NCBI GenBank assembly: GCA_964199315.1
Contig: OZ116704.1
Span: forward strand, 30,380,001 to 30,444,000
Direction of reading: 5' to 3'
Origin: Orbicella franksi
Taxonomy: Eukaryota
DNA: 64,000 nt
The notes beneath the pieces were generated by a model that searched no databases, was not told the DNA's origin, and saw only the letters and a list, made by a program, of their open reading frames with translations. The translations under genes and the position numbers were made by a program. Of the stretch, positions 12,881 to 61,500 are shown piece by piece. Every line of letters starts with the position of its first letter. Position 1 is the first letter of the stretch.

Positions 12881-13020
12881 NNNNNNNNNNNNNNNNNNNN
12901 NNNNNNNNNNNNNNNNNNNNNNNNNNNNNNNNNNNNNNNNNNNNNNNNNNNNNNNNNNNNNNNNNNNNNNNNNNNNNNNNNNNNNNNNNNNNNNNNNNNN
13001 NNNNNNNNNNNNNNNNNNNN
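12881..13020. other. Assembly gap (140 N)
   Basis: Run of 140 n characters. Confidence 1.
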
Positions 13021-31751: not shown

Positions 31752-34700
31752 ATGGATAAAGCAATTGACAGTAGAAACATCGGTGCTGACACGATTGTCA
31801 AAGACAATCCTACATCAATCAGAAGGTTGCTACGAGAATTTTGTGGCTATACAACCGCCCATGGTCTCGGTCGACTTTCAGAGAGCAAGAATATGATCAG
31901 CCTTTTGACATGGAGCTTGTTTTGCATCGGAGCGTCCACCATGTTTGTGCTGCAAGTGTACAATTTATTTCTTATATACTTAAGCCGTCCCGTTTCCACC
32001 GTGGTCAAGGTTGAACATGAAAGTGTAAGTATTTAATTCTTTACTTACCGTTCATCAGTTTAAACAAGTGCGTACGTTAGCTGAGATCTTGAGCCTACCT
32101 TCCGTCAATATCAAACCTCTTTATGAAAGAATACTGTGGCAGACCAGCTATTCAAGTCGAAGAATGAAATTGTGAGCATCCTGTAAAAAAGAACTCATGA
32201 AGACTTTACAAAAAAGAAAATGCTGCCGCGCAGAAAAAATTGCAGCTCATTAAGTATTTTTATTATTTAAAGTAGAGTTATCCACAAAAACGGATCACCT
32301 TATAAAGTATTGTTTTTAGTTAACATAATCCAATTTATTTTACATTCAGCGCGCTCAGTTTCCCGCTGTGACCATATGCAACATGAATATGCTGCGAATT
32401 GGAGAGCTTCCTGACAGTTACATAAAGGATATACTGGAAGCTTACACGCCATACGGTAATATAGTCAGACCATAGGGGAAAGTAAGAGGTGGGAAGGGGT
32501 AGATGAATACCGGCCAGTGGGGATGTTTTTCAATCTAGAAATTGAGTTGCCATGAGTCAGCAAAATGGAAAGGTTAAGAATATATGGAATATATACTTCA
32601 ACACAAGTAGAATATACACTTTAGCACAATTCAATTCAATACAATTTTAATTCAATTCATAAGGTCTATCTTTGGGAGACACCTACTTTCTAAGCTGTTA
32701 AATGTAAAAAAAATATATATTTCTGTACCCGTTCAATAATATGGCTGGTTTGTTCAAAAGTAGTTAATACTATTAAAACAAATATTTATATAATCATCAC
32801 TTGACGTATATATTTTGACAAATCGTGTGCAAGAAAAATACATCTTTGGTTCACAAACGGTCATAATGGCGACTGGTTTTTTTTTTTTTTTGGTCAATTT
32901 TAATTTTGTTTTAAGTGAATGGATCACACTGGGATGAACAAACTAGCAACACATCAGCTAATGCGAGCTTTTGGGAAGACGATTTCTCCTTTGAGTCTTC
33001 TGGAGAGGAATATATCGTCGATGACGAGGAGTCTGTCTATTTTGGAAGTTCAGCTGAGGAAGCCAAAGGGCTTGAATATCAGATTGAAGAAGCTCTACTC
33101 GCCAAGGTAGCACAAGAGAATGATTCCACGCTGTTTGCGACGGGACATCAGTTCAAAGATTTTGTGTTTGATTGCTCATACAGAGGATATGATTGCAGGT
33201 AGTTTATTCATCTCTTATTTTAAGTGCAAGGGTTTTAATGTTAGTTGTCGTACCTACGAAACGATTCCACCTTTCTTTTTCTCTCCCCCTCACCCAATTG
33301 TTTTGAGGTCCCCTCCTTCGTTCCTTGCCAACAAGAGATGATTACCAAACATAATTTTCGAAACCTAAGAGAGTTGACTTTGTCATACCGATGCTGAGTT
33401 GTATCATTGAAATAATACCAACACATGGTCTATTATACAGTTAATCATTGTTCCCGAGGAAAACAGCTAGTTATGTTTTCCCAAAAATCTCGATGCCTAC
33501 CGAGAGGAAGTCGATGGAAACATCGAGAGAGATTCAAAGGAAACCAAACTACCAGTGATTATAGCTCGAGTTTAGTGCAAATTTATAAGTATTCCTCAAA
33601 GGCACTCATGGTTGGTAAGATTGCTATGTTGCCCACCGGGCATTCGCCGAAGTCACTTAACCATAAGCCAATCAACGAGCTTGCGCGCTAGATTCAACTT
33701 AACTCTTAGCTATATAATAATTTCAGTTATTTATCCTTATAGTAACTACATAAGATACTGGCATACCTTCTGGGACTTTCGCTTTGGCAACTGTTTCACT
33801 TTTAATGGTGGAATCAACGACTTAGGTGAAAGCCAGAAAGTCTTACATTCGTTCAACACTGGACCTGCTGGAGGTAACGTGAGATCGGGGGTTTATTGAG
33901 GTTACTCCATGGAAAATGTGTATAAATTAGTTGAGCAGTATCCGAGCACGAACGATCGAGGAGCGCAGCTAACGAGTGAGTCTTCTGATACAGCTCAATG
34001 AGTGGATAGAAATCGTGTTAAGCATTTTATTTTTAAATCGTGCTTTCCCCTTACGTTAAGTTTTTCCCTTTTTGATTTAAAAATAGCTTGAGTAATAAAA
34101 CACAATGAATATTGCTGTCAACTTCAAATATATCAACAGAAAAAAGTGATCAGTTCAATTACCGCTGGAAGAAGTAAACTCTACAACATCATAGTATTTA
34201 GGGGTAAACCATTTGACTTTTGAGCGGGAAGGGTGGATAATTTTGAGCAGAAAAAAAAACAAAAACAAAAAAACATATGTTGCAAGCATACTTGTATCCA
34301 AAAAGTCATTTATAAGACCACTAGCAAATCAAAAAAGTTCACGTACGTTCAGTAGGCCAAAAGTGGCATGTTAGACGGAGGAAAAAAATATCATGCGTAC
34401 AGACGTCCCGCGAAAAACATTTCCAGCACACGGAAAGATTTAAAGAAAAATTCGTGCCTATACCCAATCACCCACATCCCTTCCCTCCTAATTTTATGGC
34501 CCGATGCCATACATAAGGAATCAGATATGTTCAGCTAAGTAAAGGTAAGCTTTTGTTTTCTTTCTTTCCTTCGTTTGTTCGTTAAACTACCTGCAGGTCT
34601 GAAGTTGCAACTGTTCATAGAACAGTCACAGTACATTTCAGAATTGTCTCACGCGGCTGGAGCAAGAGTGGTCATTCACGACCAAGGACTGATGCCATTT

Positions 34701-37606
34701 CCAGACAACGAAGGCAACGATGTTTTGCCAAGCCGTTCCACTTCATTTGCGATACGAAAGGTATCACGTGATAAACGCAACTGATCGGGAGGAACCCCAC
34801 ATCAACCTCCTCTGTTCTCTAGCCCTCTATTCCGGTCAAATTGGAATTTGAAAATGTTGCTTTTTGTGGAGGGAGGAAAAACAAAGGACCTTGAGAAAAA
34901 TGTTTGGAGCGAAGCGCGAACCAGCAACAAACTCAACCCGCATTTGGCAACGGGCCGAAATCGAACCCGGGCCAGATTGGTGGGAGGCCATCGCTCTCTC
35001 TACTGGGTCATGCCTGAGAAAGCACGTATAAATTCAAATGAGGTGGGGGAGGGAGCATTAAATTTGTATTTTGAAAAGATATCTTCTGAAGGTCAAAATT
35101 GCCAGTACAACAATTATTTGTACTTGAAGCATCTGATCTCACACAATTATATTGATACCTGTCGAATATTCTTCGTTCTAGAGTGTTATTGAGCGTGTGG
35201 ACCCCTTTGGCAATGGCAGTTGCATTTCAGGGGGTGACTTCAGAGATAATATCTACGCAAAGAAGTTCAATACCACATTCTCCAGACAGGTAAATATTTG
35301 GAATAAGGGTTATTGTAAAAACGAAGTAATTTCTTCTAAGATTGCATAACACAGTGTAAACCAAAATGTAATTAGTAATTAGTTTACGGACCTAACTTAA
35401 AATTTGAGGATAGAGAGTTTAAGCATGACGTTACGGCAGACGGCAAACGGCAAAGATTACCTCTGATTTTTTTTTCTTTTCTTGTCATAAATCACACAAA
35501 AATTGAAACACGTCTTGTACTATACACCGCAAATAAAAATATTTTCACTCTACTGAACAGACAGCTGAAGACAGACGGCAAAAGTTTCATTTTTGCCTTT
35601 TGCCGTTTGACGTAACGTCATGCTTTAAAATCTCTCTATTGGTTGAGACATTCACTTATTAAAATTTACAAGAAAGTAAATAAAGCAAAGGCAGCAAGTT
35701 CTTGTAAATGACTAATATGCATATGACTGGATTTATTTCTTTTTTTTTAATCTGTTTTTTTGTATTTATTTAATTTTCATTGACTTGAAGTTACTTACAT
35801 TTTTTTTTGTAAACACACATAGTTTATAAACAAACAGGTACATCATGGATTTACATACGTACACCTCAGTTCCTCTTAACTCTCTTCTCACCTTCAGATA
35901 CACCGCAGCAACAACACGAGACTGTCTAAATATCAATCTAATTGTTTTCGTACGTGCCCCATTTCATACTGTGAGCTTTTAATTTATTAGCTGATTTTGC
36001 GATCATTGCCTCAAGCAGGTGAATCATTTCAATTTTGGAATTAAATACTGTATTTATGAAATCCGTGTCAATACCTGCCATATGCACTTGAGGACGCCAT
36101 TTCTTCAACACTGTTCTCATACATCCAGACATATATGTGTCTTATGTTAATTATAGGGCTCACACCCTTCGCCTTAATTCTAGAAAGTATCATTAATTAA
36201 ATTAAATTAATTAATTGATTTACTAATTTATGTATGATGTATACATAAATCATGATTGCATGATTCACTTGTTTCTCTCAAATAGGCTTGTTTGAATTCA
36301 TGTCTTGCTAAGAAGCAGATTACAGAATGTGGATGTACAGAAGCTCAATTTCCAGCTGACGCAGATGTATGTGATATAAGGAACACTTCTACAGGTAATT
36401 ATAGTTAGACAGTATAATAGTATAATATTATAGTAATATAATACAATACAATATATAATATATGGGTCTTTTATAAGCTGAGCCTGTTGCTTGTCGCTGT
36501 TGATTTGAGTAGTCTGTCTAGTATAATCATGTATTTGGAAAACATGAATGTCTCAACTAGGAAACGTTGTGTTTCTGTTAGAGCTAGTTTTAGAGATATA
36601 TATCAAAAACTATGCGAAAGTATTCAAGAAGACACAACAAATAGAACAAGGCATCTTTAAGACATTAATTGATTGTGCTCGTCACAATGTCGATCAATAG
36701 AGCGTTTCAACGGCGCCGTTTTGGTGTTCCCATGCGATAGGAAATGAATAGGAGATGAATTTTCCACGAAGAGAACTTAAGCTGTTAAAGAACACCAATG
36801 TGACGCCATACCAAAATGGTCAATATTTCATAGTTGATTTAAATTTCAGAATGAATTTCGTAAAGCGTCAGTTTTCCATTTGTTGGGTCCAATAAGTTTA
36901 GATTGTTGGGGTATTCCACTTGAACCTATATCAGTATTAACTTATTCTGGATATAAGTATTAACTTATTCTGCACATTCAGAACAAAGAAGGAGTAGTTT
37001 TTGTAATCGAGAAATGTGATTACTCTCTGTTTAATTTTATGGATAATTCAAAGGGATGCATCTTTGTGTTTAAGTCTGAGGAAATACACTCTACTTCATT
37101 CTTGAAAACTTTAAAAAATAATCGCTCTGAAACTTTTGTAATGGCCCCTACAAACTTCTCTCTTAAATCTCGGGTTGTTTTAACAAGTAGAGTCTTATTC
37201 GTTTGTATCATATTCTTAATTTTCTCTTCATTCTAAACCTTCGTTACCTTCTTATATCTTATGTGGACTAATAACTTATCCTTCTCTGTCTCTCGTCTAA
37301 TTTTTCTAGCGAAGTGTTTGGATGTTTTACGGCGAGATCTATTATCAGGAGAACTGAACTGTGAAGTAACTTGTCCAACACCATGCACGTATGTTGTCTA
37401 CATGTAAATCATTAATTACCTTCACATTGTACTAAGCTCATTTATACGTTTTGCAAGACATATTTACTCTAAGATCCATTCAGCGCAGAATGCAAAGCAT
37501 GGTTTAATAGCGTGGGGCAGAAGCCTGTTGCCACAAAAGAGCAGCCGCACTGCCGTATAATGCAAATTATAAACCGAATTGAAAGCTCTTACTGTTGCAC
37601 TTTCAG

Positions 37607-37641
<35 letters not shown>

Positions 37642-38700
37642 GCGGCTGCTGCTGTGTTGAGATGTGCTTTTTTATATGTGTACCTACTGTAAAGCCTACT
37701 GTATTTTTTTTTCCAGTGAAGTCATATTCAGGACTTCGCTATCGATGGGCCAATGGCCTTCATTTGGATATGAGGTGAATAATTGGTGGTATTACGATAA
37801 TGATGATAAGCACGATGATGATGATGATGATTTAAATTAAACAGCATTGCACGTTTCCCCTCCCCCCCCCCCCCCCCACAGGAAGTAAAATGATATTACA
37901 GTTGTTTTTGCTTTCTGTGTTTGACTAGAATAAAGCGTCAATTCTGATAACACAGAAACATAAAAACAAAAAAAAAAACAAAACAGAACAAAACAAAACA
38001 AAACAAAAAAAAAACAGATGAAATTAAATGATAAGCAAATGAAAGATGGGAAGGAAGAGGGCGGATAAACTTGGGTGATATGAATTCATGGTCACTTGTT
38101 GCACGGTTACGTGTCCATAGAAATATCAAACCATCTGAGTTATTTTATTCAGGAAATTCTTGAGCAAAAAGTCCAAAACAAAGAAGTGTACACATCAGAA
38201 GGAGACTTTGGATACCACCTCAGGCAAGTTAAAACACTTGGTTATATAGAGACTAAGTAGCAGCCAAATAACGACATATTTTACTTATACTGCGAATCTT
38301 CTTTTTCAGAGAGAACTTTCTCGAAGTAAGAATATTTTTCGAGCAACTCAATTTCGAAAGAGTCGTCGAGAGAATTAGCTACAAGGTAATTTAATGACGT
38401 TCAGTATTTCAGAATTTGTAATTAACACTTCTGCTACGCTACCATGTAGCCACTTAGTTGAGCTGGTGGGGTATCTGTTTTATCGGTCTCTATAATCAGT
38501 TACAACAATCACATAGCACTAGTGTTATTTCGGTTTGGCAGGAAGTCAACCTCGTGGCAGACATTGGAGGGCAGCTGGGACTCTGGATTGGTATTTCAGT
38601 GTTGACATGCTGCGAGTTGCTGGAGCTTATTCTCCTAATTATCCAAACTGTTTTTAAAAGGATGTTCTCAACGAACATTATACACGTCAAACCTGCTTGA
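31752..38700 (+). CDS. DEG/ENaC (degenerin/amiloride-sensitive sodium channel) family subunit, paralog 1, 12 coding exons, 538 aa
   Basis: Exons 31752-32024, 32350-32455, 32916-33198, 33743-33873, 34597-34760, 35182-35289, 36286-36394, 37310-37388, 37717-37774, 38153-38223, 38310-38385 and 38542-38700 join in frame (1617 nt). Motifs: TTAHG pre-TM1, [17 protein letters not shown], Cys-rich thumb, and TM2 [23 protein letters not shown]. All introns are GT-AG except intron 10 (GC-AG). Confidence 0.93.
34830..35014 (-). mobile_element. tRNA-derived SINE (V-domain-like) in intron 5 of channel 1
   Basis: Minus strand: ggcatgacccagtagagagagcgatggcctcccaccaatctggcccGGGTTCGATTTC (B box; plus 34957-34968), then gggttgagtttgttg...tttttctcaagg...tttttcctccctccac...ttcaaattccaatttgaccgg. 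Confidence 0.65.
35410..35639. mobile_element. MITE in intron 6 of channel 1
   Basis: ~40-bp TIRs: atagagagtttaagcatgacgttacggcagacggcaaa versus the reverse complement atagagagattttaaagcatgacgttacgtcaaacggcaaa. Confidence 0.8.
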
Positions 38701-47789: not shown

Positions 47790-48085
47790 TTCACTATCAT
47801 TTATTATATGGCTAGCTCTGTGATTGGCTACCCGAGCAGGCAAGATGGAGCTATCTTGCCCGCTCGGGACTACCCGCCGTGTCCCGTAGGAAAAATTTCC
47901 CCGAAAGCCATATAATAAATCCTTTATTGACCAAGCTTGTTCGGTCAAGATGGCTTCATTTGGTCTCGTTCTTTTTTTTGCGAGTTTATGGACCTCGACT
48001 CCGTCTCGGTCCATAAACGCGCAAAAAAAGAACTTGGCCAATATCCAGCCATCTTGACTGAACAAGCTTGGTCAATAACCCATAC
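47790..48085. mobile_element. Non-autonomous DNA-element-like repeat with a long internal palindrome
   Basis: ttattgaccaagcttgttcggtcaagatggct (from 47924) pairs with agccatcttgactgaacaagcttggtcaataa (to 48078). Inner arms are tttttttgcgagtttatggacc / ggtccataaacgcgcaaaaaaa, and there is a second small hairpin, gagcaggcaagatggagctatcttgcccgctc. Confidence 0.65.
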
Positions 48086-48429
48086 ATATTGAAATGTCCG
48101 TTTATCATGGATGTTAATCGCGGGATTTTAATGCACATATATTGTGCTTCCATGGACTAAGGGGGATGAATCAATGTACGTTCTTAATTTTTTTTCTTCT
48201 TTCTGATTCGCTGACGTTTATTTCGAAATGAATACAAATTATAAAGAAAACTCTAATATACCACCACCTCCACTAAATTATAAAAACAGCAAATAAAACT
48301 TGTCCCAGTTTATGTTTTGTTTAAAACATTACTTACTCAAGCAAGAGCAGACGAGGATGTTCGCCTCTAGAAAATTCTAACCAAAGGTCATTTAATTTAT
48401 TTTCCTCAGTAATAGTATCTAAAGAACAC

Positions 48430-51400
48430 ATGGCCAAACTGGCAGCCGAAAACGACAAACAAAAGGCGGTCGCTTCCAAAAAGCCTTCAGTCAAAGAAGT
48501 GATATCTACCTTCTGTGGGTACACTACCGCTCATGGTCTTGGGAGGTTGGCAGATGGTGGTGGTGTTTTTCGTCGAATAGCATGGAGTCTGTTTTGCATT
48601 GGCGCCCTTACCATGTTTGTAGTGCAGACCTACAACTTGTTTGCAATTTACTTACGCCGACCTGTGTCAACTGTAGTTACCGTCCAACACGATAGTGTAA
48701 GTATTCGACGTGTGCATTGCTGTTTTACATTCACTCATTACATAGTAAGGAATTGGGAAAAGATTCGACGATACATGATCGTCATTACAAAATAGTTTAT
48801 TTTATGTGATATTTATGAATACTAGGCGAGTCTCTTCAAAATGTTAGAACACGTTTGGTATCAAAACGAGAAAATTCCACTCAGCGTAGACAAGACAATG
48901 AACTCTTTATTGTCGGGAAAGCCTTCAAAGGAGATCTTTCCTTCAAGAGGGGAAATTGGGAAAAATGAATTTATTAACAACTGATCGAACACTTCCAAGG
49001 AGATCAGTCGTAAATGGCCTGTCAGAGGATCTTTACCTTTGTTTTGTTTTATTTTGTTTTGTTTTGTTTTGTTTTTGTTCACTTGTGTGTTTGTTTTTCG
49101 GTGACAAAAATGACACTGTAAAAAAAGAAATGAAAGTTAAAAAAAAAAAAAAAACCGTCTCGGTTGGCCATTCGGTTAGTTAACCGGCCCAGCCATTGTC
49201 ACTGGTCAGTCCACCGATATGGTTGCTTGGACACGTTTGCACCACATATATACAAAACTGAACTTACTCTGTTCAGTACCTTCATAGGTAAAAATAGTTG
49301 CCGTGACTTTTGTTCGATATCTGTAAGTTCAGGATTATGAAATATTGTGAACTTCTCCTTTATTAGCATGTCAGATTTCCAGCTGTGACCATATGCAATT
49401 TAAATATGATTCGACTTGACAAGCTTCCGGATAACTTCATAGATGAAATTTTGGAGGAACTTAAGCTAGAAGGTATGGATATCTCTTACTTAATCAATCA
49501 TGTTATGTAAATAACTATTTTTACATAAACGTGAACGTGTAAATTTAAATATTAGACCTAATTTGGATTTGGAAAGCTTTGCGGAAGGTGCTGTTTTAAT
49601 GTGTTTCCCTTTAGATGCCACATTTCTCACTGTATGATCTTTACATAATTAAAAAAAAAAATCGCGGACAACTTTTAGAGATGTACGGACAGTTTTCCAG
49701 AGAGTGGAAAAATGGCAAAAATTTGGAAAGTTGAACGTAGCAAGTTATTCTGGCAGGCGACCATCTGGACATATAGATGAGAGCTTTCTGCAATTCTCTT
49801 GCTCACCACTATCAATGGATCTTGATTTAATTTGACTGCTATCGTTGACTTCTTTGATTGGTCCTTCACTTTAGTCCTTCTATTTCATTCTTTCACTTCT
49901 GTTGCCAAAGCTTCCCCTCTTCTCTTTCCATTTCAGCACTAAAGCCAAACAATGATTCCGAAGCAGCTAACAGTACATCCGGACCTGGTGCCACTGCTCC
50001 CACCAATTCAAACTCGGCCCCTCATACACTTCCAACTGATTCGTCGACCCAAGAAACACTGCAACCTTCCTCTGATGGAAGCAACACCACAGATGTCCCC
50101 ACTGGTCCCCCCACAGATGGGACTACCTATCCTCCATATGACTACGACTATTACGACTATGACTACTTTGACTACGATTACTATGACTACGGTTACTGGG
50201 ATTACGACTACGATTATTACTTTGGTGGGCTTGGGGAGGAAACCAAAGAACAGGAATACGAAATTGAAGAAGCTATCCGTGCCGAGCTGGCACTAAAAAA
50301 CGATTCAATGATAGTCGAAATGGGGCATCAGTTTGAGGATCTCGTCTTTGAGTGCTCGTTTCGGGGATATGACTGCAGGTCAATTCATAGTACTAAAATG
50401 TTAAAGATAATGCAGGAATATTAATATTGATATAAAATTCTAATAATAAAGGGCAAATAATCCCCTACTATCAACATGAATTTGAGCGACTTTCGTTTTG
50501 TGTTAAACTTGAACTAAAATATATCCTTTGATACATGGGGTAACTTAATTGTATCATTGTATTTAATTAGCATTGCTTCAGGATTTCAAAAGTACACCTA
50601 AAGACGAAAACTTGATTTTTAATTTAAAGAAATACAATTTAGCTTCAATGAAAATACCAAATTCGCAGTAGACCATTTAAAGTAGAACACATGGTCGCTA
50701 ATTTTGAACCATTTCAACTTTTTAGGAACTATTCGCGGTATTGGCATCGTCTTTGGGACTATCGCTATGGCAACTGCTACACTTTTAATGGTGGTATAGA
50801 TGACAATGGTGAAAAACAAAGAGTTCTGTCTTCCCACGTCACTGGGCCAACGGGCGGTAATAGTTTCTGACTTGTAAATGTTGCTATCCTTGAACAGTTA
50901 GGGGACGCAAGTTTTTTGATAAAGAAAGGGTTTGACCCAGCGAAGTAAACCGACTAATATCCGGCTTTGAATGGATATAACTCTGAACTATAATTGTGTG
51001 TTTCTTACTTTGGAGCTAGATATCGAATTTCGAACTGATTCTGAACATTAGCTTGACGTCAGCTGGTTACCTGAATTAATTACTGATTAACCTACCAAAC
51101 GTTTCTTAACTTGCAATAATACTATACAAGAATGACAAGCAAATATACACGCAGTAATCGAGTCTTTGTTTAAAATTCACCCAAATAAGCCATAATCTTT
51201 AGATTTTGTGTTACTTTTTTTCAGTTCGTTGTTAACAACCCTTTGGTGCTCTCTTGTTGATAAATTTTGATACTAATTATTGTTTTCAAGTGCTGCAAAC
51301 AATAATTTCCACGTTTTCTTTTACTTCAAAGCGTACGTTATTTAATTTTTAACTGAATGCGTGTACATCGAAAGTTTTGAAATCTTTTTAATCATTATGT

Positions 51401-54400
51401 TACTTATCTTCATCTTTTATTAGGTCTTAAGTTGAATCTATTTATAGAGCAGTCGCAGTACATCCCAGAACTAAGTGATACAGCTGGGGCAAGAATTGTG
51501 GTTCATGATCAAGGGCAAATGCCATTTCCTAACAATGAAGGTTACAGTGTACTGCCAAGCCGATCCACTTCATTTGGGATAAGAAGGGTAAACCATAGAG
51601 CTGCTATATTTGGATAAAAGGCCTATTACTTACTGTAGTAGAAGTGTTTGGTTTAATCTGAAAAATTAATGGGACAGGCCGATAGAGGACTGATGATAAT
51701 GTTAGAACTTGTGATGTTGTAATTTTGGTCTGATTGTTCTTATATAAAAGGTACCATATTTTAAGTGTGTCAAATGCATCATGTTCTGAAACGGGGCAAG
51801 AAGTTAAATTTGAGTGTTTCAAGACTCATGGATTTTTGCCTTTTTTACGTCGAAGAAGAGAAGTTGTTGTACCTGACCACTTACAGCAGCAACTCAAAAA
51901 ATGTTTATATATTTTTTTGGCCCTCAAACTAACTGGGTATTATTTTTTGAGATTACTGAATTCCTTTTATTCTTCCCTATAGAGCATTATCGACAGGGTA
52001 GATCCCTTTGGTAACGGGAGCTGTGTGTCAGAGAAGGACTTAAACAGTGACAACATGTATGTCAAGAAATACGGCGCTTCTTATTCCAGACAGGTAATAC
52101 ATATTCCATGTATGATTCTGTACCACTGCCTCTAAATTTTCGAGTAATAACATGTAAGTATCGTTTCGGAGCGTATCTGGCAATTATTTTCATCTAAATT
52201 CTATTACTATAGAAATGTCAAGCCTATACACATCATAGATATTGTTTTTAAGAAGCTGACATGACCGGTAAATATTCTTGCAATAACTTTTCCCCATGAG
52301 TTTTTCTTCGTTTGTAATTTTGTTTATTTCTTTATCTGTTGGTTGTCGTTGTTGATACTACTTGTTTTGCAATATCACATTTAAACTCATCACCCATTTA
52401 CAATTAGTTGATGGGCTAATGTGGTAAAAAATATCTTCGGTAGAGACATATCTTAAACTTCTTCGCTTATTTAAATAGCCATTATTTTTATTTCTTTTAA
52501 AGACCTGCTTGAACTCGTGCCAGGCCGAAAAACAAATCTCAACCTGTGGATGTGCCGAAGGCCAGTTTCCATCTGATGCAGAAATATGTAACTTGCGAAA
52601 TTCGTCAACAGGTGAAAACGATAGAAAAGGGATAAACTGAAAACTGGACGGACCGACAAACAAACGAACATGCGACCTACTGGCTGACTGACTACTAAAG
52701 TGATCGAATAGCTTGTAATGACTGTTTTAAATACATCATACAACAGTGCCTATGCAACAGCGATTGCATATTTCAATACATTACGCAGTTCTTCAATCAA
52801 CAACGATTGTCGGAATTAACTGGGGAAAAAAATGAAGGAAAAAAAAGAAAAGGACAACAAAAACAACACCAACGACAGTCAATCAGTTACTCCCTGCGAA
52901 TTTTTCCGTAAGCTATGTATATATATTTTTATGTAACTTCATTCAACAGAATTTTGAACGCAGCTGATGGACAAACGCAAACGCAACCGAGACCAATTCT
53001 GCATTGGTCAGTGTATGTACATTTTATTTGTATTTCCCATTATTTTCGCAAGTTGCTGAGTCCACCATGTCATCCCTTTCCCAGCAAAATGTTTAGAGAA
53101 GATACAACTGAAACTAGTCACTGGAGAGCTGGACTGTGAGAAACTCTGTCCTACACCATGCAGGTAAATTGGTCTTATGCGTCATTGCGTCAAACTTCAC
53201 CACCAACCCCGGTTTGAACGAAATTTTTTCGAGCCTCTCTCACCGCGTTATTTTTACGTGGGTATTCTTTTCATCTTAGCTGCTTTGGAAATTTGTCCAT
53301 GACAAAATTTACAATTTGCATTTTCAAACTGAGGCTTGGTGGTGAAATTAGCCATTCTGTTGACAGCGTGCATCAGGGCTATTTCGCATGTGCATATGCT
53401 ATTTTTGAAGCGAACCCTACTATAATTATAACTGCCTTAATCCTTCTGTTTTGGTTCATGGTGGATTTTCCTAGTCTAGAAAAAAACGCTTATAACTCCT
53501 CGAAGAATCCATGATACTGATAAGATTGTTTTAAATAAAAATACATATCAACGGGGACAACACCACAACACCATGAGCATTAACTCCGCTGAATATTTTG
53601 TTCCCAAAGAAGTGCGAGATTTTTAATATAATATGTAACGGTTGCAAATTGATATTGTTTATGTGACATTAGTAACAAAGATATGCGTTGCTCGTTGTGT
53701 CCTGTAAACGATGTGTGTGCTTATAACAACTTAATGTTCTTTAAGAAGTAAATATCGCAAAGAAACATGTTTTGAATAGTAATAATCGATATATGTTATT
53801 ATGTGGTAAAATATAAGGCTTACTAATTGACAACCGTTTTTTTTTTCTAGAGAAGTCCAATTTGTTACCACACTGTCAATGGGAAATTGGCCTGCCTCTG
53901 GATATGAGGTATGAGAGTTTTTGTAAATCTGTTCAGGTTTGTCTGAGATATATTCTAGAGTGAAGTGATCGTGTTAATGATGTTTTATAATTTTTTTTTT
54001 CTCTTCCTCAGGCAATCCTTGAGAGCCGTGTGAAGGAAAAAACCGTCTATGCAAATGAATTGTATAGAGGATATTATCTGAGGTACATAAGCTAGTACTG
54101 AAGCACATTGAAATAATATCTATCAAATAAGACCTACAGTACCGTAGTATCTTCCCGTTGAGGCATTTAATGATATGACTATTAATTGGCACTTTGCTTT
54201 CTTCGTCTCGCAGCGAAAACTTGCTTCAGGTGAAAATATTTTACGAGCAGCTGAACTATGAGAGGGTATCTGAAAGAATAAGCTATGAGGTAAGGCATGC
54301 CAGTATATCTGTATTCCTTTGCCTTTCCTTTACGAGGCTATTATTTATACTTGTTCTTCTTAGTGGATTCCAACCACTTAGTTTTCATGGGCATTCCATT

Positions 54401-55164
54401 GCTACTTAACTACATTATCTTGAAACTTAACTATGTGATTGCAACTTACTCCTCTTAAGCCGAGCCCCATCAACTTTCAACTAGAGCAAACGCGGCACGG
54501 GGGAATTAGGTGGAGGTAAAAACCTAAAAGCCCTGTGGTTTATTGTCTTTTGCAAGTATTTTTAAATCTATTGCAAAAAAAACAAGTACTGAAAAAAGTA
54601 TTTTAATCATTGTCTGTTCAGTCCGACTTACACGATGATTGAGCGATGTGTTTCGTTGTTGTTGTTGTTGTTGTTGTTGATGATGATGATGATGATGATG
54701 TTTTTAGCTCTTTTTTTTTGTACGCAAGTGGTTTCAATTTTTTTTGTATGCTTTGAAATGAAACGAGCTTACTTATAATAGGCTTAAGTAAATCAAAGGT
54801 GAGAGTTATGCATAACCAAAGTTATATCACTCTCGTTGATAGAACGTTCGTTAACTTCTTGCAGACCAAACTGAATGAAAATGGTGGAGTAAGGTTAGGA
54901 GAGGAGAGAGAGAGGAAGGGAGGGGAGAGAGGGGAGTAGGGGGGTGTAGAGGTGTGGATAGATAGTTATGAATTAAATGTTACCAGCATTTACCTCTTGT
55001 TTTGTCAGGGCGTAAATCTTGTTGCTGATATCGGAGGCCAACTGGGACTTTGGATCGGCATCTCAGTGCTAACGTGCTGCGAGTTTGTGGAGTTAGTTGT
55101 CATGATAGTGCAAACTGCCCTTGATCGTATTTCAAGACGAAAGATAATTCATGTACAGCCCTAA
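48430..55164 (+). CDS. DEG/ENaC family subunit, paralog 2, 12 coding exons, 589 aa, with a Ser/Thr/Pro plus Asp-Tyr insertion
   Basis: Exons 48430-48696, 49367-49472, 49937-50378, 50726-50856, 51424-51587, 51983-52093, 52503-52611, 53085-53163, 53851-53908, 54012-54082, 54214-54289 and 55009-55164 join in frame (1770 nt). All introns are GT-AG with the same phases as paralog 1. Motifs: [22 protein letters not shown] and [23 protein letters not shown]. Confidence 0.93.
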
Positions 55165-58576: not shown

Positions 58577-61500
58577 ATGGCAGGTGACGTTTCTTATGAA
58601 GTCAAAAAAGACAACAAGGAGAGGCAAACACCTAAGGAACTGGTAAAAGATTTCTGCAGCTACACAACTACACATGGAGTTGGAAGACTGGCTGAGGCCA
58701 AAACGCTGTTCAGCCGATCGATATGGACAGTTTTTATCCTTGGAGCCTTCGCCATGTTCTTCTATCAGACGTACGGTTTGTTTACTTTATACCTAAGTCG
58801 TCCTGTATCCACGGTGGTGAAAGTCAGGCATAAAACGGTGGGTAAACACATTATGTAAAGTGGCTCATAACTTTTTTAACAGTTATTACCAGATTAATGA
58901 ATTGGCAAAGAACACATTGGAGGCAATTAGAAAGAGTTCACATGACGTCTGGGACACATATTAAACATTTATTCGTAATAAGTATACTGCATTGAAAGGT
59001 ATTGATGTTTAAAATTACCCGACCTTTACAACAATGTGACTGTCAAGTTTACTTTTCAGTCACATATTTCTATAAATCTAGCTGCGAGGCGTAAATTCAA
59101 AACAGGAGCATTAAAAGGCCCCGAAGTCAGCGACACTTTTGTTTTTGTTCACATGCGAAACTTTGGCTATTATATTTAATTCGGAACATGTCGAAACGAA
59201 GAAAACAGTCGCTGTGGAAGTCTAAAGATGATTAAACATACCTTCAGAAACACAACTTACAGTAAAGCAATAAGATCTCGCTTCACCATGTAATGTCAAT
59301 AATTTCGATGGCATTGAAAATGGGGAAGGGTGACTTGGGTCCTTTAACTTATAACTTGGCAACGAACTCGACTCGACAGTCCGAGAATAAACTCCAGAGC
59401 TGTTGAAAAATATATACTATATATACTGTCCATACTTTTCTTTATATAACTTTTTGTCTATTCGAAAATGTTGCCAATAAATGGCGACAAAACTCGTATA
59501 CGGAGTCTTGATGGGTTATTCCCCACAAACGACTTGCCCGCATCGCCAGGCCTACGGAAGGGTTATCGCGGAGTATTTTCAGCAAATAAAACATTTAAAC
59601 CAGTCTTCCTGAAATGTCCAGTTTTTGCCCTTTTTAAATTATTTCCGGATATGACTTATTTCCTCAAAGGAGGCGAGATTTTAAAGCTCGATCAGAGAAC
59701 AAAGACACTATACTGAGTAATACAAAATAATAGTCTCAAAGGTAAACCGAAAAGATAAAATATACTACCGTTTATTACTATACTACTTTTTTATACTGCG
59801 TTGTTCGTTCCAAGAGAATGATCTCAGCCATTAATTTTTTTTTCGTGATCAGATTTATAAACATAAACATTTCGTCGAATGCCCACCATAAATTGAATAT
59901 CGTGAATGAATGCAAAAGCCAATGAGCTAAGCGTTGTTTGAGCTCAAAAAAGGAAAACAGAAGAATACAAAGATAGAGCTTAGTAGGAGTCTAAGAAAAT
60001 CGGCCTTTATTGATTATCGGCCAACAACGGGCGACAAAAGCTGTCGTTTTGTTGAAATAAAACAGTAGCAGTAGTACAATGACATAGCCAGACTCACCAA
60101 AGGCATTTTTCAATGGGAGAATCGTTGCTGGCATCATTGTTTACACTTACGACTTTGCACAGAGAAGGCATCATGCTAGATGCGAATTGACTACAGAAAT
60201 CTGAAAAGCTCATGAAACTTATTAAAGGACCGGTGAAAGTTCTGGCTATTAGGGTGTAATATTCGAGAAAAAATTGGCTTTCAAATAAATGCAAAATTTC
60301 TTGGTGGCAAAAGCGATAAAGAGCTCATACACTCCTTGTAAAATTTTGAGTTTTTAAACCCGCGTCGCACAAAAATTATTCAAAACATCTGGCCAGCTTT
60401 AATTCCTTGGGACAGTTAATCGTGCTGTGCCCTTTCAATATTCACAACTAATGTTTTTGTAGCTCCATCAGAAACTATATCGCTTATGCTTATGATGCAA
60501 ATATTGTCAACAAAGATGCTCTTATTTACACGTAGGCTCTGTATGTTGTGTGAGTCCATAACGAGATACTTGACTAAGTGAGATTCCTATATTTATTCTC
60601 TACAAAAGTAGATTTTTTTTTTTTTTTTTTTTTACACCAACAGGAGGTAAAATTTCCGGCTGTTACCATTTGCAATCAGAATGCCATAAAAGACAATGAA
60701 ATACCGGACCATTACATAGACGATATATTCAAGGAAATTTATGAGGTTCTCGATCAGGAGATGAAAAGCGATGAGAAAGATGCAGGTAATGTACGACGTC
60801 ACGATTGTCTTGATGTTTTGGTCCGCTTGAAATTGTCGTTTCATGTTCAGTTCTATTCATATAGAACTTCAAATTGACCTTTTCATATATGTGTAGTTTC
60901 AGATCAATTTTGAACATTTCATTTGTAGGCGATGATGTCACACCTACTCCAGATTTTCAGAATGATATCGATGACACTGAAAACAATGGCACCGACGAAT
61001 TATTTGATCCAGAAGAGGAACTCAGAATTGATTACCTTTTTCAAGAATTTCTCCTGTCCTATTTAGCTTTGGAGAACCAAACAGCGTTGTATAAGATGGG
61101 ACACAAATATAAAGACTTTGTGTTTGACTGCAACTTCAGAGGGATTGATTGCAGGTGTGTCATAGAGTATGACTCTTACAGTCTCTTAACCCATTGACGC
61201 CTGTGCCGGCCATGACCGGCCGTGACGAGCGTTGGCCTTACAGACTAATAGTTCCTCCGTAGTAAAAAGGGTAGAGATTAGTGCACCCCTCCAAGTTGTG
61301 TTCAAATAGGAAAAAACAACATTTTTGTGTTAATAAATAGACAGTACCGGCTTTCTATACAAGATAGACTGCTTTTGACTTAAGTTGTTTCTCATCATGT
61401 CATTGAATCTGCTTCTTGGATTTTACAATATTTCTCAAGAAGTCAGAAAAAAAAAACTTAAATTGACACAAATTATTACAAAATGTTGAAAAAAGATGCT

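Follow-up and report, generated by a model that had tools for sequence, protein, structure and literature searches.

A 64,000-nucleotide window (G000:C7:30380001-30444000) of the ~497 Mb genome of the coral Orbicella franksi carries three tandem DEG/ENaC ion channel genes on its + strand. Judging from its predicted product, the middle gene, termed channel 2, contains a real Asp-Tyr tract, conserved and of unusual purity, within the extracellular loop that is equivalent in position to the GRIP domain of the epithelial sodium channel ENaC. The insert is, from sequence comparison, a lineage-specific element of two parts, a fast-evolving, compositionally conserved linker and a slowly evolving Asp-Tyr tract abutting the acidic finger helix α2, and it is very probably a real coding insert under selection. 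The best explanation overall, to which we assign a probability of about 0.5, would be a tethered anionic regulatory loop beside α2.

The Asp-Tyr exon of channel 2

The gene and the parts of its third exon are arranged as follows, with positions counted within the window.

Channel 2: 48430-55164, + strand; complete DEG/ENaC gene, 12 exons, 11 GT-AG introns, 589 aa
Channel 2 exons 1-4: 48430-48696, 49367-49472, 49937-50378, 50726-50856, + strand
Channel 2 exons 5-8: 51424-51587, 51983-52093, 52503-52611, 53085-53163, + strand
Channel 2 exons 9-12: 53851-53908, 54012-54082, 54214-54289, 55009-55164 (stop included), + strand
Exon 2: 49367-49472, + strand; FPAVTICN strand and finger helix α1 (…PDNFIDEILEELKLE)
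Exon 3: 49937-50378, + strand; whole insert, finger helix α2 and the next strand up to …RGYDC(R)
Ser/Thr/Pro-rich mucin-like segment: 49937-50136, + strand; residues 125-191, 67 aa
Asp-Tyr repeat YDYDYYDYDYFDYDYYDYGYWDYDYDYY: 50137-50220, + strand; residues 192-219, 28 aa, five 15-nt units
End of exon 3: 50221-50378, + strand; acidic helix α2 (EETKEQEYEIEEAIRAELAL), a conserved NDS sequon and GHQFEDLVFECSFRGYDC

Exon 3 is flanked by an acceptor AG at 49935-49936 and a donor GT at 50379-50380 and is read in frame 3 (in frame from 49939), yielding LKPNNDSEAANSTSGPGATAPTNSNSAPHTLPTDSSTQETLQPSSDGSNTTDVPTGPPTDGTTYPP, then YDYDYYDYDYFDYDYYDYGYWDYDYDYY and then FGGLGEETKEQEYEIEE…, i.e. FGGLGEETKEQEYEIEEAIRAELALKNDSMIVEMGHQFEDLVFECSFRGYDC after the repeat. 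The first part holds 34 Ser, Thr or Pro among its 67 residues (51%), which corresponds to the ~50% expected of a mucin-like (Pro/Thr/Ser, PTS) domain, and the inserts of orthologues hold 32-60 such residues. It contains a single basic residue and the sequons NDS, NST and NTT at N130, N136 and N174, and no tandem repeat was detected in 49937-50136 by Tandem Repeats Finder. The same program described the second part as a repeat of period 15 with 5.0 copies, 76% matches and 0 indels. Its 28 residues comprise 15 Tyr, 10 Asp, 1 Phe, 1 Gly and 1 Trp, with Asp encoded by GAC (seven) and GAT (three) and Tyr by TAC (ten) and TAT (five); stops interrupt one of the two alternative frames across the repeat, and the second alternative encodes a stretch rich in Thr, Ile and Met. 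The mucin-like stretch, the three sequons and the repeat with its 15 Tyr and 10 Asp were all present as noted in the preliminary description, which had delimited the element to 49937-50223; the start and the repeat are right, whereas the end is wrong, as the exon continues to 50378 and adds α2 and the next strand. Searching the exon-3 product against Pfam returned no family at E values up to 1. A pentapeptide-repeat β-helix was considered for the five-residue unit and rejected, since no profile matched and the orthologue model is disordered there.

The host of the insert is, by its family hallmarks, a DEG/ENaC channel. The exon model is a spliced prediction guided by the orthologue P0067 from Oculina, and its 589-aa frame runs without interruption. 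The exon 1 product matches the Pfam family ASC (PF00858) with an E value of 1.4e-10, a genome scan with the same profile matched the channel 2 exons, and the orthologues carry precomputed PF00858 assignments. Further hallmarks are HG at 35, FPAVTICN at 93 and the filter G-I-S of the second transmembrane segment (TM2) at 555, together with 14 extracellular Cys at residues 99-469, the columns of which vary little or not at all among 39 relatives. Lying between TM1 and TM2, the insert is part of the extracellular domain, and the earlier assignment of the exon to the extracellular domain of a DEG/ENaC is borne out by the spliced gene model and PF00858. Structural work was carried out on P0067, standing in for the 589-aa protein of the window. 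The solved structures nearest to it by sequence are those of human ENaC α/β/γ (E 6e-50 to 5e-45), with ASIC1 (about 1e-40) and FaNaC ranked behind them, and the fold of its AlphaFold 2 (AF2) model, with a predicted template-modelling score (pTM) of 0.69, matches ASIC1a, FaNaC and ENaC chains at E 1e-27 to 4e-32.

A protein search of 1.8 billion sequences, using the exon-3 product as query (no profile), gave 37 matches, most of them exon-sized fragments of coral assemblies in which the elements follow one another in identical order. Full-length annotated orthologues were found in Oculina patagonica (P0067), Porites lobata (P0066), Stylophora pistillata (P0070), Acropora digitifera (P0069) and Montipora capricornis (P0068), so that RefSeq models from five genera contain exon 3. 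Three spliced RNA contigs contain it as well. L008 (Joint Genome Institute, JGI, sample 3300008016) presents one 612-codon open frame from exon 1 through exon 12, reads …LIDELTKE/ALQESLL… and holds an NY/DY tract; the junction of exons 2 and 3 (…E/A-L…) is identical in this contig and in the RefSeq model P0067. In L007 (JGI sample 3300008033) the junctions from exons 3-4 through exons 7-8 coincide with the boundaries of the window model, and in L009 (Logan SRR12053381) exons 2, 3 and 4 are joined. As all three are spliced with exon 3, the exon including the repeat is present in the mRNA of related corals. Contig L009 (product P0046) also retains intron 1 and joins exon 4 straight to exon 8, skipping exons 5-7, which could reflect an alternative isoform or misassembly.

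Contigs of two RNA-labelled runs (X16 and X17, 'metatranscriptomic poly-A') over 48400-54390 span introns and exons alike without splice joints; being collinear with the introns, they count as genomic DNA or unspliced RNA rather than as expression. Two poly-A raw-read runs placed 0 and 3 reads on the gene, and the 3 fall on a repeat near 53330. Exon inclusion, for which an RNA-seq check had been proposed, is accordingly backed by the transcripts of relatives (L007, L008 and L009), while own-species reads show no joints.

Conservation and position in the finger

In a maximum-likelihood tree, channel 2 groups with the Oculina, Stylophora and Porites proteins and the Acropora-Montipora pair (support 100/99); the channel-1 group is sister to this orthogroup, followed by the channel-3 group and then a soft-coral clade. 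Since the orthogroup spans robust and complex lineages, it is older than the divergence of these two main groups of stony corals. Its members share the exon layout and the succession of a Ser/Thr/Pro linker and an acidic/aromatic tract, with variation in unit number and spelling (DY, NY, FY). In all channel-2-like exons recovered save those of Acroporidae, the last 40 aa ahead of α2 contain 9-16 Tyr and 6-19 Asp, with 0-1 Lys/Arg. Over the same 40 aa, Acropora has 4 Tyr and keeps DYISDYDYDYD, and Montipora has 0 Tyr and an Asp/Glu/Val-rich tract ending in FDFD (DIDEDDDVDVDTVGDEDNDEGFDFDG). Conservation of the repeat, for which a search of orthologues had been proposed, was confirmed for Oculina, Porites, Stylophora and other corals, with a degenerate state in Acroporidae. 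Channel-1-like exons have 0-3 Tyr in the corresponding 40 aa, and the homologous exons of the two neighbouring channels read as follows.

Channel 1 homologous exon 3: 32918-33199, + strand; only a ~40-aa acidic/aromatic linker, without the Asp-Tyr repeat
Channel 3 homologous exon 3: 60925-61155, + strand; short acidic linker, without the repeat

The closest relative, L005, aligns without gaps across linker and repeat, and the ratio of non-synonymous to synonymous substitution rates (dN/dS) was compared along the exon.

Ser/Thr/Pro linker vs L005: 84% nucleotide identity, dN/dS 0.60
Asp-Tyr repeat vs L005: 93% nucleotide identity, dN/dS 0.046 (28 codons, 6 substitutions)
α2 and next strand vs L005: 92% nucleotide identity, dN/dS 0.016

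The introns flanking exon 3 are 87% and 71% identical in this comparison. Within the repeat, four substitutions are synonymous, three of them at Asp third positions, and two are non-synonymous (Tyr-to-Asn and Phe-to-Tyr), with no indel. Comparison with L011 gave dN/dS values of 0.52 for the linker, 0.11 for the repeat and 0.08 for α2; pairs more distant than these have saturated dS and an ambiguous repeat alignment. The linker appears to evolve almost freely apart from its composition and the Asp-Tyr tract to be constrained, the direction being consistent despite the small counts. The claim of protein-level selection, as opposed to a slipped microsatellite, therefore stands, with a dN/dS of 0.046 in the repeat vs 0.60 in the linker and a Tyr/Asp tract kept in frame in both stony-coral lineages. 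A pattern search of the genome for DNA encoding DYDY-x-DYDY gave 31 matches vs 20 for the reversed control and no second channel with the motif. Stop-free Asp/Tyr tracts of 208 and 84 codons with GAYTAY-type units were seen at G000:C8:10294658-10295089 (-) and G000:C11:11377690-11377857 (+); they look like simple repeats and may be non-coding microsatellites or acidic Tyr-rich proteins.

In the AF2 model of P0067, helices at 109-130 (α1) and 218-236 (α2) flank the insert, and residues 129-218 have a predicted local distance difference test (pLDDT) score below 50 and no secondary structure. In a HMMER alignment of P0067 with ENaC α, the unaligned query residues 107-251 lie opposite ENaC 145-276, the finger/GRIP stretch. 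In terms of this model the insert sits between finger helices α1 and α2, the position of the ENaC GRIP domain, and it is predicted to be disordered. The GRIP domain, likewise located between α1 and α2, covers α2, a helix in contact with the thumb as well as with other gating elements (Noreng et al. 2018, PMC6197857), and inserts at this place were described by these authors as unique to ENaC (PMC6197857). The two inserts belong to the same family and share the insertion point directly upstream of the gating-coupled α2 and a comparable length (~95-130 aa). Different from the coral insert, the GRIP domain folds into a β-sheet, has a conserved disulfide and contains an inhibitory tract with polybasic furin sites on either side (PMC6197857). 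The coral insert is without Cys and without a polybasic site, predicted to be disordered, polyanionic and of no detectable sequence similarity to GRIP. Residues 99-264 of channel 2 contain no Cys, whereas GRIP needs a disulfide-stapled core of strands P1-P4, and R-x-K/R-R was found in the exon-3 product of none of channels 1, 2 and 3. The insert as a true ENaC GRIP domain was therefore rejected, the position being shared but the disulfide, the strands and the furin sites being absent. In FaNaC, also a DEG/ENaC, lineage-specific finger elements form the ligand site. The P0067 model matches the FaNaC structures (PDB 7YVB, 8ON7), the insertions of which are folded and non-polyanionic, unlike the coral insert.

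The interval between FPAVTxCN and GHQ in many relatives follows one layout, in which sequons are succeeded by an R-x-K/R-R site, a Ser/Thr/Pro stretch, sometimes with tandem repeats, an acidic/aromatic patch and α2. The anthozoan paralogues P0090 (…DYYPTDDYGDDYDDYYY…) and P0091 are examples, and the scallop P0036 (…RRKR FVDDFDNDKIDEYLDYDEDDF…), the hemichordate P0114 and P0116 and the soft-coral P0085 have the same layout, with tandem units inside the inserts of P0085 and P0116; Nematostella P0080 has a mucin-like run without a Tyr patch. Furin-like R-x-K/R-R sites upstream of Ser/Thr/Pro and acidic/aromatic patches at the GRIP position were observed in P0079-P0094, P0101, P0114, P0116 and P0036, from cnidarians, hemichordates and a mollusc, and in none of the three genes of the window. 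By comparison of these sequences, channel 2 is the extreme and most regular version, without the polybasic site. The assertion that no DEG/ENaC has such a module was overstated, as the RefSeq orthologues carry it and similar patches occur between α1 and α2 in many cnidarian, mollusc and hemichordate paralogues. The papers searched contained no functional work on coral members of the channel-2 clade, no description of this shared layout and nothing on amiloride-sensitive channels in Stylophora; the NeNaC paper (PMC9822975) makes no mention of finger inserts, furin, glycosylation or mucin.

Sulfation context and proposed function

Tyrosine sulfation was evaluated with a rule-based script (not Sulfinator) built on the classical context rules, under which a Tyr needs an Asp/Glu neighbour (-1/+1), three or more acidic residues but no more than one basic residue within ±5, and neither a Cys nor a sequon close by. 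The rules were passed by 12 of the 15 repeat Tyr vs 2 of the 24 Tyr elsewhere in the protein. An orthologue of tyrosylprotein sulfotransferase (TPST) is encoded in the genome at G000:C1:18701954-18702541 (-), and its match to human TPST2 and TPST1 has an E value of 7e-79; at the locus L001 (1441-2286) the catalytic region lies in one 281-codon open frame with a signal-anchor-like N-terminus. The favourable sulfation context suggested earlier is upheld by both results, and sulfation of at least some of these Tyr is, on this predicted context, slightly favoured over its absence. No paper linking ENaC and degenerin to tyrosine sulfation was found, and searches on cnidarian TPST gave no useful result.

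Sulfated acidic Tyr clusters are known from other proteins, the cluster of PSGL-1 being an established precedent (PMC7310474, PMC9372746). Fibromodulin carries up to 9 sulfotyrosines (PMC7310474), and the sulfated acidic tracts of fibromodulin, osteoadherin and lysyl oxidase are heparin mimics binding basic clusters and collagen (PMC7310474, PMC9372746). The coral tract resembles these in its long Tyr runs interleaved with Asp/Glu, the lack of basic residues and the secretory pathway. It differs in place, the matrix tracts extending soluble proteins at the N- or C-terminus and the coral tract forming a loop inside an ion channel; it is also more regular than they are (a pentapeptide unit, 15 Tyr in 28 residues), and its sulfation is putative. 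With PSGL-1 and GPIbα it shares a glycosylatable Ser/Thr/Pro segment beside an acidic Tyr cluster on a cell-surface protein. The comparison with the stalk design of PSGL-1, drawn in the preliminary description, is topologically off. PSGL-1 bears two or three sulfotyrosines at a free distal N-terminus above its stalk, whereas the coral order is linker, Tyr patch and helix α2, in a loop anchored at both ends in the finger, with the patch abutting α2 and proximal to the channel body.

In the proposed mechanism, the linker would be N- and O-glycosylated in the Golgi and many Tyr of the repeat would be O-sulfated by the coral TPST, resulting in a polyanionic loop with up to roughly -30 charge per subunit atop the extracellular domain. 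The loop would act as a tethered anionic regulatory element that concentrates or binds cationic partners next to α2, with divalent cations, basic or amidated peptides and basic matrix proteins as candidates. Its occupancy may tune gating, because α2 contacts the thumb and the gating machinery, and it would take no part in the pore or the primary fold. A regulatory or capture role as such is offered tentatively, the odds being put somewhat below even. More specifically, the loop might be a poly-sulfotyrosine 'heparin mimic' in the gating finger that captures basic amidated neuropeptides or basic matrix proteins, as part of a GRIP-like protease- and charge-regulated finger module ancient in the family; we consider this version improbable.

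Several observations weigh against the regulatory loop. Tyr is dispensable in some lineages (0 in Montipora, 4 in Acropora), with acidity and Phe retained, and repeat length varies by genus, Oculina being 10 aa (two pentapeptides) shorter and L012 lacking 14 aligned codons. (GAYTAY)n tracts occur elsewhere in the genome, and the motif can arise by slippage. The few substitutions behind the dN/dS of the repeat and the saturation of more distant pairs belong here too, as does the fact that no own-species spliced reads over the gene were recovered. Sulfation, glycosylation, a ligand and a current are all putative.

One rival explanation is a tolerated low-complexity expansion, in which slippage of a 15-nt unit in a pre-existing acidic/aromatic linker enlarged a permissive disordered site, with constraint only on frame, on solubility or acidity and perhaps on a glycan-bearing spacer, and with no specific ligand or modification. 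The α1-α2 position is hypervariable in the family, with 57-202 aa between the two anchors; the predicted disorder of the insert, the whole-unit length changes among genera, the loss of Tyr in Montipora and most of it in Acropora, the function of the paralogous channels 1 and 3 with short linkers and the D/Y-coding simple tracts elsewhere all agree with this explanation. We nevertheless regard it as unlikely, in view of a dN/dS of 0.05-0.11 in the repeat vs 0.5-0.7 in the Ser/Thr/Pro part of the same exon, only two amino-acid replacements beside 3-4 synonymous changes and no indel relative to L005, and the persistence of a Tyr/Asp-rich tract free of basic residues across the robust/complex split.

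The tract might also serve, unsulfated, as an Asp/Tyr patch anchoring Ca2+, mineral or matrix, either as a matrix tether via dityrosine or other Tyr cross-links for mechanosensing or in Ca2+ sensing near the calcifying surface. This would suit a tract that is Asp-rich, is free of basic residues and occurs as a full repeat in stony corals; for osteoadherin, acidic extensions rich in Tyr have been proposed to bind Ca2+/hydroxyapatite (PMC7310474), and some cnidarian DEG/ENaCs, e.g. NeNaC8, are gated by lowered Ca2+ (PMC9822975). However, paralogues from non-calcifying animals (anemone-related, soft-coral and hemichordate) have similar acidic/aromatic patches, both the placement of the channel in calcifying cells and a matrix partner are hypothetical, and the Tyr context fits TPST substrates better than known cross-linking motifs, so that the anchor has only a small share of the probability. 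Finally, the idea of an annotation artefact, with the segment intronic, spliced out or part of a decaying gene, leans on the missing spliced reads of the window's species and is barely credible and already largely refuted, given the intact 589-aa frame with 11 canonical introns, the identical exon boundaries in the complementary DNA (cDNA) contigs L007, L008 and L009 of relatives, the exon in the RefSeq models of five genera and the purifying selection on it.

The tandem cluster and meaning for the family

The two genes on either side of channel 2 are its paralogues.

Channel 1: about 31797-38694, + strand; DEG/ENaC paralogue
Channel 3: starts at 58619 and continues beyond the window end (64000), + strand; DEG/ENaC paralogue

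In Oculina (P0067 and P0071) and in Stylophora (P0070 and P0074), members of these orthogroups are likewise found on shared contigs, and the tandem DEG/ENaC cluster appears, from these shared contigs, to be conserved in stony corals. An inverted repeat of 76 nt (47924-47999 and 48003-48078; 80% complementary, 3-nt spacer) precedes the start codon of channel 2 by about 350 nt. Its arms sit in open reading frames that read alike on both strands (…AILTEQAWSI…), which suggests a repeated element. An assembly gap is marked by a run of N at 12881-13020.

The stimuli of DEG/ENaC channels are very diverse, and much of this is encoded in the finger, as in the protease-released GRIP of ENaC and the peptide site of FaNaC. 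The Asp-Tyr tract offers a mutable handle for seeking the stimulus of this clade of coral channels. If sulfated, its up to 15 potential sulfotyrosines would to our knowledge be the densest such cluster in a membrane channel; were the tract only a tolerated spacer, it would be an ordinary low-complexity insert. The heparin-mimic version, if true, would add a new mode of ligand recognition to the DEG/ENaCs. The furin-like site, mucin-like stretch and acidic/aromatic patch of the paralogues bear on the statement that only ENaC has finger inserts regulated by cleavage (PMC6197857), and, if that reading is true, the layout shared among many invertebrate paralogues would mean that a GRIP-like module is ancient and not unique to vertebrate ENaC.

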